NCBI GenBank assembly: GCA_000708835.1
Contig: DF237486.1
Coordinates: 1-62,089, forward strand
Source of the DNA: Klebsormidium nitens
Taxonomy: Eukaryota; Plantae; Klebsormidiophyceae
Direction of reading: 5' to 3'
DNA length: 62,089 nt
Position 1 is the first letter of the stretch; each line of letters starts with the position of its first letter. Positions 10,115-48,622 of this stretch are shown piece by piece. Position numbers and translations under genes: made by a program. The notes beneath the pieces are model-generated. The model was given only the letters and a program-made list of their open reading frames with translations. It was not told the DNA's origin and searched no databases.

Positions 10115-12159
10115 ATGGAGGAACGGTCCGTGATGGCGTCCGCTGCAGCTATGCCGCTTGTTGCGCTGCCCAAGGATATTCTTCGCATCATCCTGAAGAA
10201 GATCAGCTTGAGGGACCGCTTGCGCTTGGAGCTGCTTGACAAGAGCCACCGAGACACCCTGAGAGACACGGAGCTGTGGCAGGAAATGGATCTTTGCGCC
10301 ATGCAAGCATTGAATCTGAAAGAGGACCAGTTGCTGAGCCTTCTAGGCAGGATTGTTCCTGGATTGGAGCAGGTTGCATCAGAGATAGAGAGCATCGCAG
10401 TGATTCTCCGCAGCCTGACATGTGAATTTGTGGAGCAAGTCCGCAGACCTGAGCTTGATTCTGCAGCCTTGATTTCGGTCAGAACCATTGCGAAGACCTG
10501 CATGGTATGGTTCGCTGAACAAGTCAGGCGCATCTGGCAACTTCCTTCTTCAAGTCAGTTGCTTTTCAAGGTCCTCCTGCAGACGCTTTTGGATCCAACT
10601 GCTTTCATCATAAGGGTGGATGCAAGAATGCGCAAGCATCGAAAGTCGTTCCGTCAGGGCTCGAGAAATACTACAATCAGCCTTGATGTTTCTGGGGCCC
10701 GATTTTTGCCTCCACACTCCATAGGTGCATGCATCATCTCCCTGTCAGCAGCAGGATTTGAGCTCAATCTGAAGATGGACGGCGAGAGTGATCCTCTTTT
10801 TCCGTTGTATCATCTGGTCGGTCTTCTGCGAATTCTGGCCTTGGTCAGCTCAGTACAAGTGAACATGGTGGTGGCTGGCTTGTATCCAGGGTGGAAGAAG
10901 CACTTTCTACAGGAATACAACTCTGAAAGCCTGTCGGATCAATAACAGACTCCAGAATTTGATCTCGCGCAAGCTAGGCACCAATACATGGCAGACTTTC
11001 ACTTCATCCGATTTAAAGGGTCGGAGGCATCTCCTCGTCAAGATCTCCAGGACAAGATTTTGGCGCTTCTTCAGCATAGGAATGTGATCGAGGCAGCAGC
11101 GGGCCGGTCGTATGGGTTGCGCAGCGGTAGTATCAGACCCAGGGTGGTGGCTTCAGCCGTGGTCTTCCAGAACGTTGCGCTACCCCAGACCGAGACGCAC
11201 GAAGACCTTCGAGACTTTCTTCACGAGTGTCCGTCCAAGCTCCGCTTTGTTTTCCGTGACTGTCTGCTTGGTTCCTCGGACGTCCGCAATCTCTGCGAGC
11301 TTCTGGGAAACAGTGGTGCAAGATCGGTCTCCTTCGAGCAAGCAGGGTTGCCATATTATGCTCTTCATAACAGCTCTACAATTCCGGCTGACGTATTGGC
11401 CTCAGCAGCGTTACAGAAGAGCACGGACCTTCGAAGCCTAGAACTCGACTGCCCGTTCCTGCTGGACGATCTAGACGCGGCCGCCAGCTTTCTCGCCGAA
11501 AGCGAGAACTCCTCCGAGCTCGTGCTCAGGAAAGTTGTCTTTGTGGGGGTTGACGACGGAGCGCTGTCCGCAAAGCTTCGGGAACTGTGCGCTTCGGAAC
11601 GGGGTTCCCGGGTGAAAATCGTGCAGCACCGGACGCCCACCCAGCTTCCCTTGAGGAGCACAGGGGAGACATTCGCGAGCGGAGACAATCTGAGAGACGC
11701 TTCCATGTCGGTTTTCCAGCTGCGATTCAGCACCGTCGAGTTGGACGAGAATACGCTGAGGGTGGTGGACGTAGTCGTGGAGGGTTACGCGGTGGTCATT
11801 GCCCTCCTCTTTCTGGCCCATTATTTAGGCTTCGAGATCTTCACCTCCCTGCTCCAGGCCACGTACTGTGGTCTCAGTGTCGGTGCGGTCCGTGCCCTCT
11901 GGCCTGCGATCCGGATTCTCTTGGAGAAAGTTTCCCCGAGATGGATGCGACGGTTCGCGTGGCCCAGTATTGCCATGTCCTTGTATACATGTGCTGTGGC
12001 CATCGGCTTCGTCTCTTTCTCCCCGCTCTTGAACGCACTCAAGGGATGTACATGGGCCTCTGTCTTTTGTGGACCGGCGCGCGGCAGCTTTTCAGGGCAG
12101 TAGTAAGCTTGTTTTCGTGCAAGGACAAGGGGCTTGAGAAACTTTTGAAGTTAGATTGA
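10115..12159 (+). pseudogene. F-box/LRR-like/TM family, copy 2 (disrupted)
   Basis: F-box LPKDILRIILKKISLRDRLRLELLDKSHRDTLRDTELW. In-frame TAA at 10943-10945, with homology continuing in the same frame. A frameshift near 12045 puts the homologous end (MYMGLCLLWTGARQLFRAVV...KLD) in another frame. Confidence 0.8.
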
Positions 12160-34600: not shown

Positions 34601-36586
34601 AGATTCTGAAAATGGAAAAAGGCAGGAGGCAAATAGACGAAAGTAACTCACATTCTTTATAGCTGTCGTCAACTCTTCCTGCACAAACGACTCCTTGATC
34701 TCAGACATGTATCACATAAACAGCGGCAAACATGAAACAACACAGAACGAACCGCACACTTGGCAACAAATTCTCTCTTTGGCAACCAAGGCGGCAAGTT
34801 TTCGCTAAGCTTGACAATTTGCATCACATGGGCAGTGATACCCTGCACTGGCTCATTAAGAAGATTGCCGATGAAGTCAGGCGAAGACATTACGACGATA
34901 ACCAGTCTGGTCGCCTCCATATACTTAGCCCCTCTTTCGCAGCCGAATGCATCATGGTGGTGGTACTCTATGAGATAGTCAAATTTCAGACGCATTGCTG
35001 TACACGACACGGTACGTCCTCGGAACTAGCTAAGTAGCTTACTGCAATAGCTTGGCAAGCCGAGCATTCACTCTCAATCGCTTCAATGACCTGGAATGCC
35101 AACATCAAATTGACGATCAGAAGCGCCAAGCATATGCTCCGTCCCATATTTACCAGCCTCTGTCAGACCATCAGATCATGTCAACGGAGTCCTTGGAACG
35201 CTGTTTTGAGCGAGAGTCAATCTTCGTGAAAGGAGAGTGACAGGTGACACGCGGCCCCTGGGCCTCAGGGCTTCCTGCGCTACAGATGTTGTTCTCTCCT
35301 TGCAAATTGGCAACTTTGTCTCTACTCGAAGCGAGTCGCACCAGGATAGAAAATTCAAAACGGTTGTGGCATAAGCGGAGGGGGAAAGGACACTTTCCTC
35401 GCTCATGAAAGTATTTTGAAATACCCTGGGAGAAGAGTCGAGGTGACTTTGACTCTCGAGCGCGCGCCTCGTGTAGGCTTACAACTACCCGGGAATTTGA
35501 TATGTCAGCCGCTGTTGGCCTATTACTAATACAAATTGCTTTGCGGTCTCTCAAAATTCTGCTGTTGTAGAATCAACTCTGTATCTGGCAGATTCCTGAC
35601 TGTATCTGGCTCTCCGTCTCCCGCCAAATTCTCGCCGTTGTCTTGTGAGAAGATGGCTGGCAGGCCCAGCCTAGAATAGTAGCATGACTCATTCCTGTTC
35701 AGGGGCGCCGTCATTGCTCAAAGGACAGTCCGAGCCATTTGCCACATGAGAAGAAGCATTGTCTTCAGCCTGATCATAGGCGCACATGGGCTGTTAGGTA
35801 TGGTTGCTGAACCACACTTGGGAGGCCACACTTGGGTGGGATTTCACGTCGACCACGACAGCATACTTTCCGCTTAAAGTTCAGCACCTTGCTGCCCAGG
35901 TAGGAGGCGAATCATTCATCAGGCCGTTTTGCCTTGCCTGCTCTTTGGTTGTAGGAAAGTGCTCGACTTGCAGATGTCCTCTAGGGTGCAGGCACCACGC
36001 CGTTGTGAGAAACGTTTTAAGGTTTTTTTCTAGTAGCAAGGGCCCATAGGCAGTGTGCGTTGAAGCAAGACTTTATATGCTGTTTCATTTCGAGACCGTC
36101 GCATTTTGCAGAAAGCATGAGAAGTTGCCAGGTTCCGGGCTCAATGCTGGAGTGCCTCTTTGGGGATTTCTCAAGGGTTTTCAAAGATTGGAGCTAGGGT
36201 GTTCAGTACTTCCGTAAACTCCACCGCAGCTCCATCCTTCTTGAGCTGGCTTGACGTTGGCAAATAGGATAAGCTTGAAAACAGCTGTAGGCATATCAGT
36301 TATGGTCGAGCAATCATGGTACCGTTGGATAATCAGCAACCCACTCAACGGGCCACATCCAATTGGAGCAGTTTGACAAGGGTTTCTCGGTTTGTTACTG
36401 TAGTTGGCTGCCCCTCTGGAAAGCCTTGTGAGCCTCCTGATTGCTCGCAGCCTACGATTGCTTGATCCCCTTCTCAGCCCATGCCACGAATGGCCCCAAA
36501 GATGACACACTATGCGGCAACGACAAAATATTTCAGAAAGCATTTGCTCAGGTTCCCTTCTTGTGCTTGGCTGCGCAGTTTGAAGC

Positions 36587-39500
36587 ATGGCGTCTAGCGA
36601 GGAGGACATGCCGGACCTGGCGGAGGACAGCTCAGGGGAGTCCGAGGACGACGAGAAGCCCGACACTCGGCAGAAGTACCCTGCGCACCAACCTCAAGCC
36701 CCTTTCAATGCCAAGCCCTCAGCACAAGACAATAATGCCGACGATGATGACGACCTTCCTGAGTTGCTCGATGGTGAGGCAATCTGCAGCAGTGAAGCAG
36801 AAAGACTCCAGGAGTGTTCTTGTAGAGGTCGTTCGTTCCTCCGCATGGTGGCTTTCTTTGGGACTGCAAAAAACGGGTCTGGCCCAGTTGGATAATTTCC
36901 TTTACTTGAGTGGTTTGAGGATCTGAAGAAAGGATTCGGTTCCAGGGGTTCTTTGTGCTAGCGCTGCAGCATTGATCAGAGCCATTAGTTGAGTGTGCTG
37001 TGTAACAGATAGGGCGAGCCCAATTGAGTCACTAGAGTGTTTTCTGTTTGCAGGTGGGAGTGATGAGGAAGAAGACGACGAAGACGATGACGAGCCCCCC
37101 CCGCTGGTGGGCGAGTCTGACGAAGACGAGGACTCCGATGATGAGCGGAGCAACGGACGGGGTTACAATAAGACGGTCAGCTACCACTTCAGTTCAAACC
37201 CTTTCATGTGCCCTCTGGGAGCTGCCAGGAGAGTTGGCGTGGTAAAGGCATGCTTTTGTCTCAAGAAGATGATGCACTCTGGACCCTTACAGGGTGTGAG
37301 AAGCAGTGGAGTGCCTCGTTGCCCAGATCTTGATTACATAGACGAGGATTGTGAACGTTTTGGTTAACCTCAAAAACTGGACACCGCCATGCAGTTTGCT
37401 TACGTGATCCTTATCAGTTGGAGCTTGAGTTTCGACTCGAAGCCTCTTATACTTTGGGCCTTCTGCAGAAACCCGATGGGCCATCTCTGCCGGGCTTGAA
37501 GGCGGGCTTCTTTGCCAAGCCCAAGCCCCCACCCCAGCCTGCCCCCCCGCCTGCGCCAGCTGCCGCTTCGAGACCCTCCCCTGCGCCAGCAGCCGCGCAA
37601 CCCCAAGGCCCCTCATCCTTCAGTTTCAATTCTACTCCGAAATTTGCGGCCAAGGCGGCCCCCCCGCCTGCTGCCAAAGCTGCGCCCCCGCCGGCGGGGA
37701 AGCCCCCACCCAGGCGGAAGGACGGAGAAGTGGAGGAAGCGTCTGATGGGAATGACTCGGAAGAGGTGCCGGACCTGTTGGAAGCGGTGAGCTGTCTTTA
37801 ATGCAAGCAGCATCTATGCGCTTGCTAGCCCAGTCTCTCAATCTAAAGTTTATTTGCAGTACTCTCGCAAGCTGTGTCCGCCCATGCTATTTTGCCGATC
37901 AGTGACATAATGCATCTTGCGAATGGAAACAACACGAGTGTCCATGCATATGCCAGCTGTCCGCCCCTGTTATGACTTTAGTAATGTCCTTCATAACCTT
38001 GTCCTTGGTTCAACAGGATGACGAAGACGAGGACTCGGGGTCGGAACCACCCGACAGTGAACCAGAACAGGAGTCAGACGAGGAAGAAGAGCACGCCCGA
38101 CCAACCTACGGTGCGCAGCGGGGGGGCCCGCGCAGGGGCAGCTTCTACCCCGACTTTGAGTCGGAGGAACGGGCGATCGAGGAGCGACGGAAGCGGGAAG
38201 CAGAACGGAAACGGAAAGAGGAGGAGCGGGCGCGGGAAAGAGCCGAGCGGAAACGGAGAGAACAAGAGGAGAAGAAGCGGCGGCAAGCGGAGGCGAAGAA
38301 GCGCCAGATGGAGGACGCGGCCGTTTACGCAAACTCTCCCGAGGCGCGGGAGTTGGCGGAGCAAGCGCGGCTGCGCGCCGAGGCGGAGATGGAGGAGAAG
38401 CGGCTGCAGATGGGGCTCGGCCCGCGCGAGAAGACGCTGAACGAGGGCGAGGAAGAAATTGGGCCGGCGTACTTTTGCCGGGGGACGCACTGCCCCGGGA
38501 ACCAGCGCATGCTGACGAAAACACAGGAGTACATCGAGTTCCGGTGCACGGAGCGGTGTTTGCTGCTGTACCACACGGGGGATTGTCACCGGAAGGACGT
38601 GAAGCTGAAAATGGAGAGAGAGCACGGGGTGTGGAAGGAGGAAGAAGGGGCGCGCTGCATCACGCCGGACTGCCCAGGGACGCTCACCAACGGGACCAAG
38701 TGGAACAGGTTCGGGAAAGTGTCGTACCAGGTCAGTGCGCACCGTCGCTGGTTGGTGTTTCGTATCTAGAACGGGCGATATGTGAATGTTCCGACGTGCT
38801 GCTTTTCCGCTATGATAGCCCTCAGGGGCTTGTATCGGCCTGTCTCAGTGTTCGTTAAGCCAGTCGCAGACATCCAACTTCGTCATCTTCCTTAGACGTT
38901 TCTTTGGCACGCTTCCTAGAAGATCTTTTTCTGAGAATCCAGATTCGAAAGGCAGTGAAGTTTGTACTTTCACGGAGGTCCAGGATTCTTCAGCTTCGTC
39001 TGGTTTTGGCGGCTAACCGCATTTGCCGCTTGCCCCAGATCATCGACCCCGAGAAGTACGAGAAGAAGCGGCGCGAGAAGGAGCGGCTGCGCGCAGAGGA
39101 GAAGGCGGCCAAGCAGGCGGCCAAGGCGGCGGCGGCGTCAAAGCGGTCCAAGAAGCAAGAGAAGCACGACGAGGAGGAGCTGGAAGGCTTCGCAAAGTTC
39201 CGGCGGTCCACGAAGAGCCGAACGTTCACGAACTTCAGCTTCCAGGGCGCGACACAGGCCGTCGCCACAGACACAGCCGCAGAGCCGATCCCGGAGGAAG
39301 CCCCGGTAGAAGCGAAGGAGACCAAAGCAGAGGCAGAGGAGGCGCCCAGGAAGAGGGGCAAGAAGAAGAACGCAGATGGGGGGGCGCCGGTGGTAGAGGC
39401 AAATGGGGGGGCCGGCGGGGCGGGCTCGAGTGGGGGGCACGAGGAGGGCAGCGGGGGAGGGGGAGCGCCGGGCATCGCGGTACTGGTAAAGGCACCCCTG

Positions 39501-42500
39501 GTAAGTTCTCCCGACAGTATCATGCACCAATGGCTTTTTAAAAATGCCTCCAGTAACCTTGTCGTCGCGTGGATCCTCAGCAGACATCTACTCCACGCCC
39601 CAAGAGCATCTGTGCTTACCATACATTATTGGAAGCTCCTCTGCACTGCTTACACGGATGTAACTTTTCGGCCAAGCAGAGCCCTTTCAAAGGATCGGCC
39701 AAACCTTCCAAGACCAAGACAGCAACCGCAAAACCCATCGTGCCTTTGGAACAGCAACACCTTAAGGATTGCCATAGTTTTGCCCTAGTCCAAGGTGATG
39801 ATTCCGATTATCTAGGCATCATCCAATGCCCATTTGCGGCCACAAGGGTTCAATAATCCAAAAAGGCCACCGGAATTTCAAAAACTGTCATAATCAGCCT
39901 CAAAACGCGTTTCCAGACAAACACTACAGCAGTCAGATTCTGGTCGGAAGCACCATTGATTTCCACCTTCCTATGCTGGATTGTTGGAGAATGAATCCAG
40001 ATCAAGTCATTTGGAATCGTCACTACTGTGTACGGCTGTGTTTGTGATGTCAGCGGCCGGTGGCGGAGCGCGAGCTGGATGACGGGGAGGTGACGGAGTA
40101 CCGCAAGAAGGAGGACGAGGACAACGTGTTCACGCTGGGGAACAAGGACCGCACCAAGGACAAGGGCAAGCAGAAGGTGAGAAACGGGAAACAGGAACAA
40201 GAGGACAACGATGAGAAGAGGGCTAATGGTGTTTCTCATCCCTGGCAACCAGAGGGCCTTTCGTGGGTCAAAGGGCACAAGCAACGGCGTTGGGGGACCT
40301 ACGTGTAAAGCATTGGTTTTTAAGTCCACTTTACTTTGAGAAGGTGAACTTGTTGACATAGGTTTTAGGCACCAGCTCACGACATACGGAAGGCCTCGTC
40401 ACTTCTAAAAGTTCTTGACTTTTTCCAAATCAAAAAGGGGCCGGCATGCCCGGCGTTTCGGAACGTGCATGCTACAAGGGGCGTGTGCTTTGTCAGCTGC
40501 TCACCGAACGTGCGGAATCAAACCAATTGCCCGAATGCTTGGGCAAAGGAACAACGGACCGTTGGTAGGAAGTTCCGTAACTTAGAAAACATGCGGCGAA
40601 TCCAATCCGATCGAATTGAGCCCGCCGCAATTTGAAGACCGAGACGATCGTCCCACGGGGCGACCTTGCCCCGCCTTGTGCCCTGCAGGTGGACGCCGTT
40701 CCGGAGCCCCCTCCCGCCGCAGCCGCCAAGGGCAAGGGCAAGAAGAAGGGCATGACGCTGAGCATCAACGAGTTCATCACCTCCGACGACCCCGATCCGC
40801 CGCTCTCTTTGCGCCCGCAAGGAGCCCCGAGCGCTTCCCGCCCCTTCATCAACGACCCGGGCNNNNNNNNNNNNNNNNNNNNCGACTCGCACGGACCGCC
40901 GATGCACGGAACTGCCGATGCACGGACCGCACATGCACGGACCCCCCATGCACGGACCGGTTCCGGTGGTCCACAGGCAGCCCCAAGAGGACTTTCCGGT
41001 AGGAGTTGCTTCCCTTCAGGCTGCGGAAACGTGGGAATGTCGGCTTGGAAACGGGCATTGCCTTCGGTCGGCCTCTCGTCCCTTTTTTGTTTGCTGGAAA
41101 TAATAAAGAAGGAAGGGCCGGATGCAGGGCGCATTGGAAGTCCAAGTAGGCAAGGACCTGTGTCGCACGGTGTCTACTCTGCGGGAGCCCGTGTGGCGGT
41201 AGGTTCGACATCAGACAATGCTTTGTCTTTCGATGATGGGATGCAGCATACTGTGAGCGGTTTTGAAGATCTCCCGCGGTACCCACTTTCACATCGACTT
41301 GTTTCCTTTCTACCCAGGAGCTACACAGGGGCCCTGGCGGGACGGCCACGACTCCAAGCGCCCCTGGGTTCCAAGAGCGGCCCAAAGACCCATTCTCGCT
41401 GGCGCTGGACTCGATCCGTATCCGGGATACGGAGGTGAGGGACCCATTTAAAAGGGGCAACCAGAGGATCTCGAGAAGCTGGGTTCCCTTTTCAAACGCA
41501 AGATTCTGACGCTGTCTTGGCGTCCCAGCCAAATGCTGAATTGTTTCCGGAAAATTACTCACAATTTGCAGAGCGGACGTCGTAGTATCTGGTGCATGTC
41601 GATACTCTGTCAATAGCTCTCTGTGCCGGCAGCACTGTCACACATTCATTGCTTGCAGTCTGGAGCTTTCCATCTGAGGGAGACAGTGATACACATCCTT
41701 TTGCGCTGCAGCCGACGCGGCATCTGGTGCTGGAGGACGTGGACGGTCGTGCGGACGACGAGGAGATTCGGAGCCTGCTGTGGGAGTATGGCATGGTGGA
41801 GGAGATGACGCGCTTCCGGGGCAGGGAAATTGCGTTCGTCACCATGAGGTAAGCGCGCCCGTGAGAAAGCTTTCAGCAGGGAACATGATCAATAGAAGCT
41901 GACGTCAGCGTGAAACTGTGAATAGGCGCAAGCTTTTAGCTTTCCTCCTGTTTCTGACAGGGAGCAGCGGCTTGGTCTTGTTCTGTTCGCAGCCAAGTTG
42001 GCCAGAGGTCGCTGCGTCAGCGTCCGTCTTTACTCGATTTCGTTGGTGCATGCTCAAGTTTGTTATGGATGCCGTCAAAGTCCAGCCATGAAATAAGACA
42101 TTGCCACATGTGCGCTCCAGTAACAGCAGCTCACCTCACGCGCACTGGCGCATCTTGTGAGCATATTTGGCCGAGCGTCTTTCTTCCTGCTGCTTACAGT
42201 CCTGCTAAACTCTTATCGGTGCCACGTGCAGAACGGTCGAGGAGGCCGCCTCCGCCCGGTTACTGCTGCCCAACAGGAGCCTCAAGAACCGCAAGGTCAA
42301 GCTGGACAGCGTCAGCCAGGTCAGCGCCAGCCCCCCTCAGTCGCATTATTGCCCCAGTGAACGCTGTTCTGTTACGCCATGTTGAAACCAAGGGCAGTGC
42401 TCAGAGTCCTGGTTTTCAGGTTACTGCTGCCCGATGGNNNNNNNNNNNNNNNNNNNNNNNNNNNNNNNNNNNNNNNNNNNNNNNNNNNNNNNNNNNNNNN

Positions 42501-45500
42501 NNNNNNNNNNNNNNNNNNNNNNNNNNNNNNNNNNNNNNNNNNNNNNNNNNNNNNNNNNNNNNNNNNNNNNNNNNNNNNNNNNNNNNNNNNNNNNNNNNNN
42601 NNNNNNNNNNNNNNNNNNNNNNNNNNNNNNNNNNNNNNNNNNNNNNNNNNNNNNNNNNNNNNNNNNNNNNNNNNNNNNNNNNNNNNNNNNNNNNNNNNNN
42701 NNNNNNNNNNNNNNNNNNNNNNNNNNNNNNNNNNNNNNNNNNNNNNNNNNNNNNNNNNNNNNNNNNNNNNNNNNNNNNNNNNNNNNNNNNNNNNNNNNNN
42801 NNNNNNNNNNNNNNNNNNNNNNNNNNNNNNNNNNNNNNNNNNNNNNNNNNNNNNNNNNNNNNNNNNNNNNNNNNNNNNNNNNNNNNNNNNNNNNNNNNNN
42901 NNNNNNNNNNNNNNNNNNNNNNNNNNNNNNNNNNNNNNNNNNNNNNNNNNNNNNNNNNNNNNNNNNNNNNNNNNNNNNNNNNNNNNNNNNNNNNNNNNNN
43001 NNNNNNNNNNNNNNNNNNNNNNNNNNNNNNNNNNNNNNNNNNNNNNNNNNNNNNNNNNNNNNNNNNNNNNNNCAGAGTCCTGGTTTTCAGGTTACTGCTG
43101 CCCGATGGGATTTGTGCACAGAAGGCTTTGACCTTGCTGAGGATGCCCATTTAGGAGGAGGGTTTCTGCTTCCCTTTATCAAGACCTGGAGGTTCGTCGC
43201 ATCACAGAATCGTGTCACATCTGAGAGTCTGTTGGTTTGGTCACATTTCGCCCAACCAGACCGTCAGCAGATTGTTCGCATGACGTTCTTGAAAGTGCTC
43301 CTGGAAATCATCTTGACTCCGTTTTATGATTTACCCTCATATTGCTGATTCTGCGCCTGCAGCACCCGTCCCCCTCTTTCTTCGCCAACTACCAGCCCCA
43401 GTGGGCCGCTCACGACCTCATCACCCCCCGGACCAAGCGACCCTCCCCTCTCGCGGCGCCGTTCATTCCGGGGGGGGCGGGGCCCTCGCACCAGTCTCTC
43501 GACGGGTCGGAGCAGTGGGAAGAGTTCGAGTGGAGCGCAACTGGAGAAGACGCATTTGCCGCCGGCGGCGCGAGCGACTGGGGGAGCGAAGCCCCGGTCG
43601 GCAGTTTCGGCAGCTCCGGGGGAGAATTTGGATTGCGAGCAGCCGCCGCGAGGGGAAAGATGAAACCGGACGCACCGGAGTTTGTGCCGAAGTCGGTGCT
43701 TTTAGCGCAGACGAAACAGGAACCAAAGAGTGAGGCTAAGGCAGAAGCGAGCGGTTCGAAAGGGGAGAGCAGCGGCGCCGGGTCGAGCAGTGAAAGTGCG
43801 AGTTCTGCGAAAGTGGAGGAGGCGAGCAAGCGGCCGGTGTCCGCGCCAATGGACGAGAGAGAAGCAGTGGCGGGGATAAACGAGGCGAAGGGAAAAGAGG
43901 CTGTGGGGGAAAAGGAGACAGCGGATCGACCAGGTTCAGCGCCGCTGAGAGCGAGTGACCAAGCGAAAGGAAAGGGGATTGCTCTGGAGGAAGGGCGGCC
44001 GACGTCAGCGCCGAAAACGACGCCGCCGGCGGGCAAGGATGCCGGCACGGAGGAGCGGCCCACTTCCGCGCCGACCGCGGCCTCACCAAAGCGGAACGGA
44101 ATGGCAACGGAAGCGCTCACCGGGGGGGGCTCGTTCTCCAAGATGGAGTCGGCGAGAGACACACCGGCGGCAGGAACGTCCGGGCGAGAAGCGCTGACGT
44201 CATCAGGGGCGGCCAGATTGGACTCTGCCAGGGGCGTGCTGGGATCGGGCGGCGCGAGAATCGAACCGGGGAGAAGTTTGTTGGGACCGGGAAGTGGTCG
44301 GTTGGAGTCAGCGAGAGACCTGCTGGGGTCGGGGGGTGATACCCGGCCGCGGAGCACGTCCCCAGTGGTGCCGCTGCCTCCGTCCCTGCTAGCGGTGCAG
44401 GCGGGGCGGCTGCCGATGCTGAATCGGCCGTGCAACTTTGCAATGGGACAGGTGAGGCGGCTCCGGGCTGTAAGTGCTGTGGCGATTTCGGCAATGTGCG
44501 GTATTGTGAAAGGTTGGATGAGAAGCTTTGCGGGCAATCTTAAATCAAGACGCTTGAATGTCCTGACTAGTTCAATGCATCTGAGGTCATCCCGAGTCTT
44601 CGTTTTCCATGTTGGCATGCAAGCAGGTGCAAGCAGGGAGTGTGCTTCCGCAGGCTTCCGCTGTGAATTCAGCAGGGCCTACTCAAGATCAAAATTCAGG
44701 ACTTTTTCGTTTCATGTGGCTTCACGGAGTTGGCCTCTGGTCCGGAAGTTGAAATTTCCGCACGTCTGCACGTGGTTGGTTGTATCGTAGTATTGGCTCA
44801 GGACACTTATGAAGACTGTGTCGCACCCACCGAACCAAATCCCGGAGCGAATCCAGACCCCGTCTAAAGCGGAGTCCAGGAAATCGTTCTCTTGAAACTC
44901 CCTTACACAATCTTGCAACGACATTCGAATTCATATTTGTGTGCGTTCTTTGCCGCCAGATCATCGCGACGACAGCAGAAACGCTCAAAGTTCAATAATA
45001 AGAACCTTCGAATGGGATTGTCTCAAACTCTGTGCGCGCTCCTTGCCTCCAGATCATCGCGACAACCACGGAGACGCTGGCGCTGTACCAGGACAGCATC
45101 CGGCTGGACAGGGACCACCTGGTGCAGGGCTGCCAAATCATACCGCACGCGTGCGCGCTCTTCCTGTTCAACATCGAGGAGCTGGAACTGCACGGTTTCT
45201 ACGAGGCCACCTCCGGGTCGTACCTGCAGTGCCGAGACCCATGTCAGTTGTATTCCTTCTTTGCATTTGTTTCTTCCTGTTCGTCCTTGCTTGCCTCGTA
45301 TCCATGTCAGCTATTTTCCCTTCTTTGCATTTGCGACTTCTTGTTCGTCCTTGCTTGCGTCATATCCACGTCAGCTTTCGTTCCTCTCTTTGTTTGTTGG
45401 TCCTTATTGTTCCTTGCTTTTCCTTGTATGTTGACTTCGACCCATCTTGGCGCTTCAGCTTTTCCCCGGCTCTTACGCTGACTCGATTTGTCTGCAATAC

Positions 45501-48500
45501 TCTCGTCTTGCTTCAGCTTACATTTCTCAGCAAGTGGACGTCATCTGGTTCTTGATACGCAATTTCGGGATTTGTGGCAGCGTCTCCTTTCTCAACTTCC
45601 GGATCTTGTGTTCTGCTAGTTCAATTCGAACTGCTTTGGGAGTCAGTGTCTATTGCCCCTCTCCGCTTTGTTGTCCGTTCCGGAAGCAATTTACCGACTA
45701 GAATTCAGGAATTCTGACTACCTTCACCTGCTCTTTTTCCTTCAGTTCACCAAATTGTGCAAACACGTCTGTCACCTTGAAAGATGTCCTGACCGAAGTT
45801 CGACATGAAACGTCCGTCCACTTCCTCGTTCAATCTGGAAGTGTTGCTGACGGTTTCTGCACTGAAGCAGGACAGCTTGGCGAAGTCCTAACATTCATAT
45901 CGAGATTGTGTTCTTTTGACAGGTGATCGTGCTTTCTCGGACAGATGATTGCGGGCATAACGACAAAAAGGGTTCAAAAGCGATGGCCCTCGTTGTCTTT
46001 CGTTGCTGCCTTACTTTCGCCAGATCTTCCTGCTACAAGAACTTGCACACTTGCAACATGAAGCGGAGGACACTGGGACGTTAGCATGACCCTAAAACTC
46101 GAGTTCTTTCCTGACTGCTCTCCCTTTGCCTGCGCAGACACGGGCATCATGTACGGCGTGGAGCAGCCCCACATCGCGTTCCGTTGCGTGCGCCGCTTCC
46201 CCGTCCCCCTCGGCCGCACCGAGATCGAGCCGCTCCTTCCCCCGGGCTGGTGGAACGCTGACACGTGGCTGCTTCCCCTGGTCCTGCCAGCGCTACAAAC
46301 CGAGATGCTGCTGCTCCTATTTGAGGACAAGGCCGAATACGAGGAGCGGAAAAAGCGGGGCTTCGCCGAAGAACTAGAGGGGCAGCTGGAGATTGCGCAG
46401 GCCGCGGCGGGGCCCCCTACCCCGCCGCTGCCCTCAGGGATCCCCCGGCCGACGCCCGCGAATGCGGTGGTTGCCGCGCAGAGTCCCCCTACGGCAGCAC
46501 CCAAGGAGGAAGCGCTGTCGGCGTCTGCTGCGGTCCCGGCGACCATCGCGGCAGCGGCCCGGGGCGCGGCGGAAAATGGAACCGGAAACAAAGCGGCGAA
46601 CGGAATGGTTGAGGAAATCGGCGAGGGAAGTGGGTCGGCGGGAGCGAAGACCGAGATTCCAGGTGCCAGCTCGGGGGTGCCGGAAAAAGCGCCCGTGGCG
46701 AGTGCGAGCGGTTTGCAAGCAGCCAAGGAAGATCGGCCGGCAAGCGCAAAGGCCAGCGGAACGGAAGCGCCGAAAGCAGAAGCGAACGGCCGTGTGGCAA
46801 CCCCCCCGAAAGCGGCGCCGGCGCAGCCCTCCTCTTCCGGCAGCGCCAAGGAGCCCGCCGCTAAGCCAAGTTCGCCCTCCACCCCCCTCTCGCCCCAGCC
46901 TTCTCCATCCCCCCTCCACGAAACCGCAACCAGTGGGCGCGGGGCCCCCGATGACATCACCAGCATTCTGGCTGAGATCACCTCCGCTGCTTCGGGGTGG
47001 GGTGGTGAAAGTCCTACTATTCAGCCGGCTGCGTCCATCCCCCCGAAAAGCGCCCCCGGCAACCCCCGGACTCCCCCTCCTGGCGTTCAAACGGAAGAGC
47101 GGGTTCCAACCCCCCAGAAACGGGAAGGAGCGCGGCCGGCGAGCGGGACACCGGGGGCGGAAGAGCGCAGCACCTCGCTGCCTACGGAAGGAGGGGGGGC
47201 GAGCACAGCGGAGGCGGCGGCGCCCAACATGCAGTCGATCCTGGACATGCTCCTGCCCAAGGTGAGGGCAGCTGAGAGATTGGGAGAATAGCAACTCTCC
47301 TTGACTGAAGAATTGCACAGTTGGTGGAATTGGGCCGGTTCAAGATTGGCATCCCCTTCCTTCTATCCAGGTGGTGAGTGTTACTGTTAGAGCGTACAGC
47401 AATCCGGTCCGTGTCGCGTTTTTGCGGCCTGTTCGGGACCAGCCCGACGTCGGAAGTTGAGCAAAAGTGGCGCGCATGCTTTGTCTTCCTTGTTCGTCCG
47501 TAGATTAAAGTCCTTCTCCAGAGTAGCACTTCGGGTTTGCTCGTAAAGCGGGCACACTTCCAAGTACCTACTTTGCGTGGCCCAAGCTTCGAGCAACGAA
47601 AAGGCTGGGCGACGTTCTCCATTTCCCAGTTGCATCTCCAACTTCGAAGCTCTCTTGCTCTCTCTTCTTACCTTTCCTCTTCTCTGTTGCCAGGCTGCCC
47701 CCTCTGCCCCTGCGCCAGCCCCTCCCGTCTCTGCTCCCACCCCCCGCCGGCGTTCGCCCCTACCGACCCCCTGTGAAATACAACCCCCTGGGACAGGCGC
47801 CCCCCTCCTCCAATGGCCGCGTCTCGACCCCCCCGGCCCGAGAGTCCCCACCCCCCCTGGTCGACGAGCGGACCGCGTGCAAGCTGTGCTGGGTGCGCAA
47901 GGCGGACTTCTTCATCAAGGAGTGCGGTGAGTGCCTCAAGTGCACAGGACAGCAAGGACCATCTTTGAACATGCTTGGTTCGTTCGGTGAATCAGGAAGA
48001 GTCGTTTCCGTTTAGCAGACTCGATGACTTTGAGAGTTCCATTTAGCAAGCTAAGCCTTTTCAACTTGCTTCCTTTGACAAACAAGAAGGTTGAGCAGTC
48101 TTGACAAACATTTTGATAGAGACGGGCAGCTTTCCTTGCGATGCACAGGCGTACTGCTGCTCTTGCATGGTTGTACGGTTTTGTTCTTTGAAATCCCGAG
48201 CAGACCTGGCAACCAGACCTGGCAACCAGACCTGGCAAGACTGGGGTCATTCGCTTGAACGGCTATCGTGCGCAACTTTCGCATTAGTTGACAAGGAAGC
48301 AAAAGCTCTGCTTACATGGACCAGAACACTGTTGCGAACTCGGACGCTGCGTTTCAACGCTGTGCTTCGCTTTATTGTCAAAAAGAGTGCCAAACAATGG
48401 CAACACTTGACAAAGTCTTGCTCGCTTGCTCGACTCCCTGCATACATCCCGGTCTGTGCGTCTTACCAATAGCATTTCTCTCCTGCCCTCGTCCTTGCAG

Positions 48501-48622
48501 GCCATATGGGCCCGTGCTTGTCCTGTTTTGAGGACCCTCGTATCAACTCGAACCACTGCCCCCAGTGCCGCCGGAAGATCGCCACTGGTGACCCGACCAA
48601 GTTCATTCGCATGTTTAGATAG
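36587..48622 (+). CDS. ~1,700-aa multidomain putative RNA-associated RING E3 ligase (acidic region, TTC3/DZIP3-like Cys/His domain, RRM, PAM2-like motif, DCD, C3HC4 RING), ~14 exons
   Basis: Exons ~36587-36774, 37054-37174, 37469-37786, 38017-38730, 39039-39500, 40054-40176, 40689-40998, 41712-41848, 42232-42319, 43363-44451, 45053-~45217, 46138-47261, 47719-47926, 48501-48622. Most junctions join in phase. RRM: HLVLEDVD...EIAFVTMRTVEEAASA. PAM2-like: MKPDAPEFVP. DCD: LFLFNIEELELHGFYEATS. RING: CKLC...ECGHMGPCLSC...CPQCRRKI. The DCD junction near 45217/46138 is unresolved. Confidence 0.78.
40903..40962 (+). repeat. Short coding repeat (atgcacggacc, MHGP) x3-4
   Basis: Encodes MHGT...MHGPHMHGPPMHGP next to the 20-N gap. 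Confidence 0.7.
42438..43072. other. Assembly gap with duplicated flanks (36 bp)
   Basis: 42402-42437 is identical to 43073-43108. Confidence 0.9.
45240..45425. repeat. Intronic tandem repeat, ~63 bp x3
   Basis: Three degenerate units of ca(t/c)gtcag...ttctttgcatttg...ttcgtccttgcttgc.tc.tatc. Confidence 0.75.
48202..48238. repeat. Intronic 13-bp tandem repeat x3
   Basis: cagacctggcaac occurs about three times. Confidence 0.8.

Follow-up and report, generated by a model that had tools for sequence, protein, structure and literature searches.

Gene structure and transcripts

The window analysed here, the whole 62,089-nucleotide stretch of Klebsormidium nitens contig DF237486.1, carries on its forward strand the gene KFL_005370080. 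Its protein, GAQ89571.1 (1700 amino acids, P0023 below), was identified by exact-cluster look-up and bears the public names 'hypothetical protein' or 'RRM domain-containing protein'. RNA contigs from four public runs, each from a different study, were placed on positions 36500–42400. All parts skipped in the spliced contigs of this region are bounded by GT..AG. The runs are recorded as 'RNA?' and, since their contigs are spliced, they are RNA. The following exons were obtained:

36570–36773 (ATG at 36587), 37054–37175 and 37469–37786, forward strand: upstream coding exons, from spliced contigs and reading frames
38017–38730, forward strand: domain exon, phase 0 at both ends, in spliced contigs from all four runs; its 3' end is the stretch 38476–38730
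39039–39500 and 40054–40176, forward strand: downstream exons, from joints and reading frames, also conserved in a Klebsormidium-like metagenome locus (L001)
40689–40998, 41318–41434, 41712–41848 and 42232–42319, forward strand: later RNA-supported exons, from spliced contigs

The exons within 36570–37786 encode a low-complexity, acidic and proline-rich N-terminus. The domain exon continues with an acidic stretch and a K/R/E-rich charged stretch before reaching the Cys/His domain that is the subject of this study, and the K/E-rich charged region that comes immediately after it is encoded by exons 39039–39500 and 40054–40176. The joints on either side of the domain exon (37785>38016 and 38726>39035, both GT..AG) are present in all four runs, and the P0023 model agrees with the splicing that the RNA contigs show on both sides of the domain. 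Exon 38017–38730 is 77% identical in DNA sequence to L001, and in a DNA comparison with the same locus collinear conserved islands extend from 38054 to 48621.

RNA contigs of 4.0 kb start near 40552–40687 and extend about 3.3 kb past 41846, while a loose contig end past 42319 matches the genome from 43363 on. The 3.3 kb extension is long enough to reach the C-terminal RING described below, and we infer that a single transcript runs from the Cys/His domain to the RING.

In all four runs 200–290 extra letters precede 36570 and match near 35861–35890, which points to a further 5' exon ahead of the ATG at 36587. An assembly gap of 20 N (40863–40882) lies within exon 40689–40998 and is spanned by RNA contigs with extra letters. 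The public protein shifts frame at this gap, reading ...SINEDRRCTELPMHG..., and the annotated sequence is probably wrong at this point. A second gap, of 635 N at 42438–43072, is located in the intron between exon 42232–42319 and the exon starting at 43363.

A conserved Cys/His domain

The domain and its candidate ligands (GAQ89571.1 numbering, with the corresponding window positions in parentheses) are as follows:

38476–38730, forward strand: Cys/His domain, defined by translation, conservation and a DNA motif for CITPDCPG that is unique in the window
C357 (38476), C362 (38491), C380 (38545) and C384 (38557), forward strand: candidate ligands one to four
H389 (38572), C393 (38584), C417 (38656) and C422 (38671), forward strand: candidate ligands five to eight

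The translation of 38476–38730 is stop-free and reads CRGTHCPGNQ...IEFRCTERCLLLYHTGDCHRK...CITPDCPGTL...VSYQ, and a GT donor at 38731 closes the domain-coding stretch. The peptide quoted for this interval in a preliminary description of the locus matches the translation exactly and is located inside an RNA-supported exon.

All eight Cys/His positions are retained in the sequence alignment with a Klebsormidium relative, Mesotaenium and Sphagnum, with the spacing C-x4/7-C-x17-C-x3-C-x4-H-x2/3-C-x18-23-C-x4-C. Further retained residues are found in E-x-x-C-x-E-x-C, a W-K, G-A-x-C and T-P. Relative to L001 the domain has a dS of 0.81 and a dN of 0.11 (dN/dS = 0.14), and the Cys/His pattern is held by purifying selection. 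A back-translated pattern for CITPDCPG has a single occurrence in the window, where 0.01 would be expected. Taken with the single Pfam family that the domain matches (see below), the ligand conservation, the dN/dS ratio and the unique motif place the Cys/His signal beyond chance. The streptophyte members define a domain core of eight Cys/His positions plus C-x-TPDC-x-G, and the conservation of these eight positions points to a two-zinc module.

In Sphagnum the domain is split by an intron (positions 10444 and about 10850 of the Sphagnum locus L002) after C-V-T-P, the D-C-P-G part falling in the following exon (DCPGKLIKV). The K. nitens domain has no intron at this site; its intron comes after S-Y-Q.

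Match to the TTC3/DZIP3 domain family

The preliminary description suggested a resemblance to the domain shared by the animal E3 ligases TTC3 and DZIP3, to which it ascribed the elements C-x3-C, H-x2/3-C and CLTPDCxG. In the streptophyte domain all of these elements are present, the last in the form C-[IV]-TPDC-x-G. The corresponding Pfam family is PF19179 (TTC3_DZIP3_dom), which aligns as follows:

38470–38718, forward strand: PF19179-aligned stretch, covering profile positions 29–113 of 116 and P0023 residues 355–437

With hmmscan, residues 335–445 of P0023 match PF19179 with 27.7 bits (E = 2.4e-6) and so exceed the family's gathering score of 26.9 bits. The profile comparison proposed in the preliminary description thus gives a match, albeit a borderline one. 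An 85-residue piece gives 26.5 bits (E = 5.9e-6) and matches no other family at E ≤ 10. Depending on how the K. nitens domain is excised, its score varies between 21.5 and 27.7 bits and straddles the gathering score.

The comparison was extended to an alignment of four sequences, two from Klebsormidium and one each from Mesotaenium and Sphagnum (alignment A2), in which the K. nitens segment is 33–81% identical to the others and 33–38% identical to those from beyond Klebsormidium. PF19179 is matched by all four members (best E = 5.9e-8), and in each case the match covers profile positions 29–113 of 116 and leaves about the first 28 positions unmatched. It is the sole Pfam family common to the four, in agreement with the resemblance first suggested; the one other family in the scan, TRASH_ZMYM4, appears in a single member with E = 0.074. 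The whole Mesotaenium endlicherianum protein ME000058S08624 (P0005, 1318 amino acids) reaches 27.2 bits, which is above the gathering score, and the Sphagnum exon reaches 20.9 bits although the last motif lies in the next exon. PF19179.6 is also present in the precomputed annotation of two Klebsormidium fragments. That diverged lineages each pick the same region of PF19179 argues well for homology, even though the individual scores are borderline, and the view of the domain as a divergent homologue and member of this family, with a match at the edge of the gathering score, is supported by the sequences.

Sequence and profile searches of the PDB with the domain returned nothing significant. AlphaFold2 models of the domain, from alignments of four and six sequences, have pLDDT values of 36.5 and 45.8, too low for a fold comparison.

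Profiles rich in cysteine may draw in other cysteine-rich sequences. The ENA protein P0004 (810 amino acids) consists of 47-residue tandem repeats (...ILKCTKQCLLDFHFFKWN...) and matches PF19179 with 35 bits and LOB with 36. It sums partial matches past the cut-offs, and the PF19179 profile can thus be fooled by cysteine-rich repeats.

Further domains and a corrected C-terminus

Downstream of the Cys/His domain the gene encodes four further modules:

41712–41848, forward strand: RRM exon of the same transcript (RRM_1, E = 0.0022, 18.3 bits, below the gathering score)
43666–43695, forward strand: PAM2-like motif KPDAPEFVPK (Pfam PAM2, E = 0.013, 15.6 bits, below the gathering score)
45134–46465, forward strand: DCD (Development and Cell Death) domain in exons of about 45134–45232 and 46134–46465 (Dev_Cell_Death, E = 2.3e-4; conserved islands)
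47833–48622, forward strand: C-terminal RING, with a first exon ending near 47931 and a second at 48494–48622 including the stop codon (zf-C3HC4_3; frame conservation)

The counterpart of the PAM2-like motif in Mesotaenium reads LNAHAPEFV. The DCD domain belongs to the PUA-like clan of Pfam. In K. nitens its pieces score 16.9–21.4 bits and remain under the gathering score of 27.8 because introns split the domain. When P0023 and P0005 were scanned with hmmscan at E ≤ 0.1, only PF19179, RRM_1, RRM_occluded and Dev_Cell_Death were returned. The K. nitens queries were single exons or the P0023 protein.

The RING is absent from GAQ89571.1, the last exons of which, within 47690–48622, are read in a frame that contains stop codons in L001. 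The two RING halves, C-K-L-C...C-G and H-M-G-P-C-L-S-C...C-P-Q-C, are in frame with L001 and share the stop codon at 48622. The second half matches zf-C3HC4_3 with E = 4.8e-6 and shows C-x-H-x3-C-x2-C. Since L001 shares the RING frame and interrupts the annotated one, the C-terminus of GAQ89571.1 is misannotated; the protein has a RING at its end, and the gene model is corrected here accordingly. All eight ligands of a cross-brace RING are present in a conserved reading frame, as expected at the sequence level for a RING E3.

Occurrence across lineages

A single-sequence phmmer search of 1.84 billion representatives gave seven proteins at E ≤ 1e-3. Four of these are real, namely two Klebsormidium fragments, the Mesotaenium protein and a 165-residue metagenome fragment. 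The other three, the tandem-repeat protein P0004, P0006 with its CapR/DUF4379 zinc fingers, and P0008, are spurious as judged from their Pfam content.

On the contigs of the 165-residue fragment a neighbouring SF3b1 gene is identical to Sphagnum troendelagicum proteins, from which it follows that the moss has the gene. The Sphagnum locus L002 contains the domain exon, an RRM-like exon, both DCD halves and the RING motifs, ordered as in the window. Its RRM-like match (L002:13884–14009, E = 1e-4) is collinear with the K. nitens RRM exon, its DCD domain scores 28.7 bits and passes the gathering score of 27.8, and its RING motifs read CCYCYARPPDHLILDC and GHLGPCLDC. Judging from these matches, conservation of the gene spans Klebsormidium, Mesotaenium and Sphagnum, a range that extends beyond the algae.

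At E ≤ 1e-3 this single-sequence phmmer search returned nothing from angiosperms, chlorophytes or animals, and the link to animals is consequently carried by the Pfam profile alone. Within Viridiplantae, for which the preliminary description proposed a phyletic survey, the search added Mesotaenium and Sphagnum to the lineages with the gene. A scan for metagenome loci gave nothing but further contigs of the Sphagnum type. Word-index searches, which reach close kin, were carried out with the domain exon, full-length P0023 and the four-sequence alignment and returned near relatives or nothing.

Relation to TTC3, DZIP3 and other zinc domains

The domain appears to add a new, divergent streptophyte member to a known, uncharacterised domain family, and its host has a different architecture. 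The elements ascribed to the animal domain in the preliminary description are present in it (C-x3-C, H-x2/3-C and C-[IV]-TPDC-x-G), and its host ends in a RING; it differs from PF19179 in that roughly 28 positions at the start of the profile have no counterpart and the scores sit at the gathering score. Those borderline scores, the absence of animal proteins among the phmmer matches and the 35 bits reached by the repeat protein P0004 would all fit a lineage-specific streptophyte zinc finger without TTC3/DZIP3 ancestry, the Pfam match of which would arise from Cys/His spacing and composition. We consider this unlikely: four of four sequences, 33–81% identical to K. nitens, match the same profile region with no other family recurring, and about 85 profile positions are covered, C-[IV]-TPDC-x-G among them, which is more than isolated cysteines. 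A kinship to a wider superfamily, in which the first four cysteines would form a treble-clef zinc knuckle of the TRASH/MYM/eL24 kind, is compatible with PF19179 membership and has a somewhat better chance, although it too is on the improbable side. The streptophyte domain resembles TRASH/MYM and eL24 in its C...C-P-G ... F-x-C-x3-C and the aromatic residue that comes next, ribosomal protein eL24 is found in the PDB at a weak E of 0.77 with C..C.PG...F.C...C aligned, and one member of the alignment gives the similarly weak TRASH_ZMYM4 match. Neither match is significant, however, and eL24 was not recovered by the PDB profile search. The first Cys pair of TRASH is spaced x2, compared with x4–x7 here, and the streptophyte domain adds a second set of four ligands. 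Least probable, and very much so, is a relationship to the Headcase N-terminal domain (HECA_N, PF15353). It was the first match of the Mesotaenium domain in a protein-language-model search (score 0.83, 175 of 256 features shared), and Headcase proteins are components of RNP granules (PMC11952099). The score is nevertheless under the reliability line of 0.9, two of the ten best family-bearing matches agree on it, it is absent from hmmscan at E ≤ 10, and the K. nitens domain gave unrelated Sushi matches in its place. The Sushi matches (score 0.79) are likewise under the 0.9 line and were rejected as a sign of kinship.

A separate question is how far the relationship extends beyond the domain. 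The preliminary description envisaged a TTC3/DZIP3-like ligase lineage that may be ancient and retained in streptophyte algae or was independently shuffled. The resemblance of the domain holds at the level of the profile match, but an ancient ligase lineage is not supported: when P0023 and P0005 were run through hmmscan at E ≤ 0.1, no TTC3/DZIP3 region other than PF19179 (TPR, helical) was matched, and the C-terminal RING is of the zf-C3HC4_3 type and not RING-H2 as in DZIP3. The gene is present in Klebsormidium and Mesotaenium, yet it is not confined to algae, as Sphagnum has it too. The absence of other TTC3/DZIP3 regions together with the RING type makes us prefer an old domain that was recombined into different RING ligases, and the sequences lean towards shared ancestry of the domain alone. 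We consider it unlikely that the entire protein is the orthologue, in the plant lineage, of an ancient RNA-binding RING ligase of the TTC3/DZIP3 type. In favour of this reading, the streptophyte and animal proteins both have the domain in their N-terminal or middle part, charged regions and a C-terminal RING. To our knowledge, RRM, PAM2 and DCD are not features of TTC3 or DZIP3, and instead of the animal arrangement the streptophyte host combines these three with a C3HC4_3-type RING; at E ≤ 0.1 only PF19179, RRM and DCD are recovered. DZIP3, also called hRUL138, is described as an E3 ligase of the RING-H2 type that binds RNA (Kreft and Nassal, 2003, as cited in PMC13717357), and the two proteins would have in common an RNA-associated E3 character, charged regions and a C-terminal RING. 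For the streptophyte protein the association with RNA is predicted from its RRM, PAM2 and DCD modules, and the RING subtype differs. Orthology with DZIP3/hRUL138 is not supported by these sequence comparisons. We give equally little credence to the broader scenario in which a PF19179-type module and a C-terminal RING were joined in an RNA-associated E3 before the split of plants and animals, such that the streptophyte gene would be the counterpart of DZIP3/TTC3 and the domain would be the element by which both recognise substrates or RNA in mRNP-directed ubiquitination.

Possible function

The reading that we hold to be probable is that of a compact domain of about 85 residues, homologous to PF19179 and likely to bind two zinc ions through seven cysteines and one histidine, within one long expressed RRM/PAM2-like/DCD/RING gene that is conserved in Klebsormidium, Mesotaenium and Sphagnum. 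Eight Cys/His ligands would fit two zinc ions. The domain is located in the N-terminal third of the protein between two strongly charged K/R/E-rich segments, and the other parts of the host (RRM, PAM2, DCD and RING) all point to mRNA–protein complexes. The PAM2-like motif would bind poly(A)-binding protein (PABP), and the zinc domain may recognise or scaffold a partner protein or RNA and in this way place the RING on substrates in poly(A)-mRNPs. Most simply, the protein would be an E3 ligase, as predicted from its RING, that acts on complexes of poly(A)-mRNA and protein. Animal TTC3 and DZIP3 would share ancestry with the domain alone and not with the ligase as a whole.

No description of a function for the TTC3/DZIP3 domain was found, and the papers found that name both proteins do not concern the domain. 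No paper was found on PF19179 (by full-text search), on kfl00537 or on the full architecture. The mRNP setting of the streptophyte domain provides a testable hypothesis for animal TTC3 and DZIP3 as well, and a conserved, uncharacterised gene for a predicted E3 ligase is now defined in Klebsormidium, Mesotaenium and Sphagnum. A DCD protein that combines a PF19179-type zinc domain with RRM, PAM2 and RING was not found described in the literature. A probable DCD domain is shared with plant DCD-domain proteins (PF10539, Dev_Cell_Death): the Sphagnum sequence passes the gathering score of this family, and that of K. nitens matches with an E of 2e-4, below this score.
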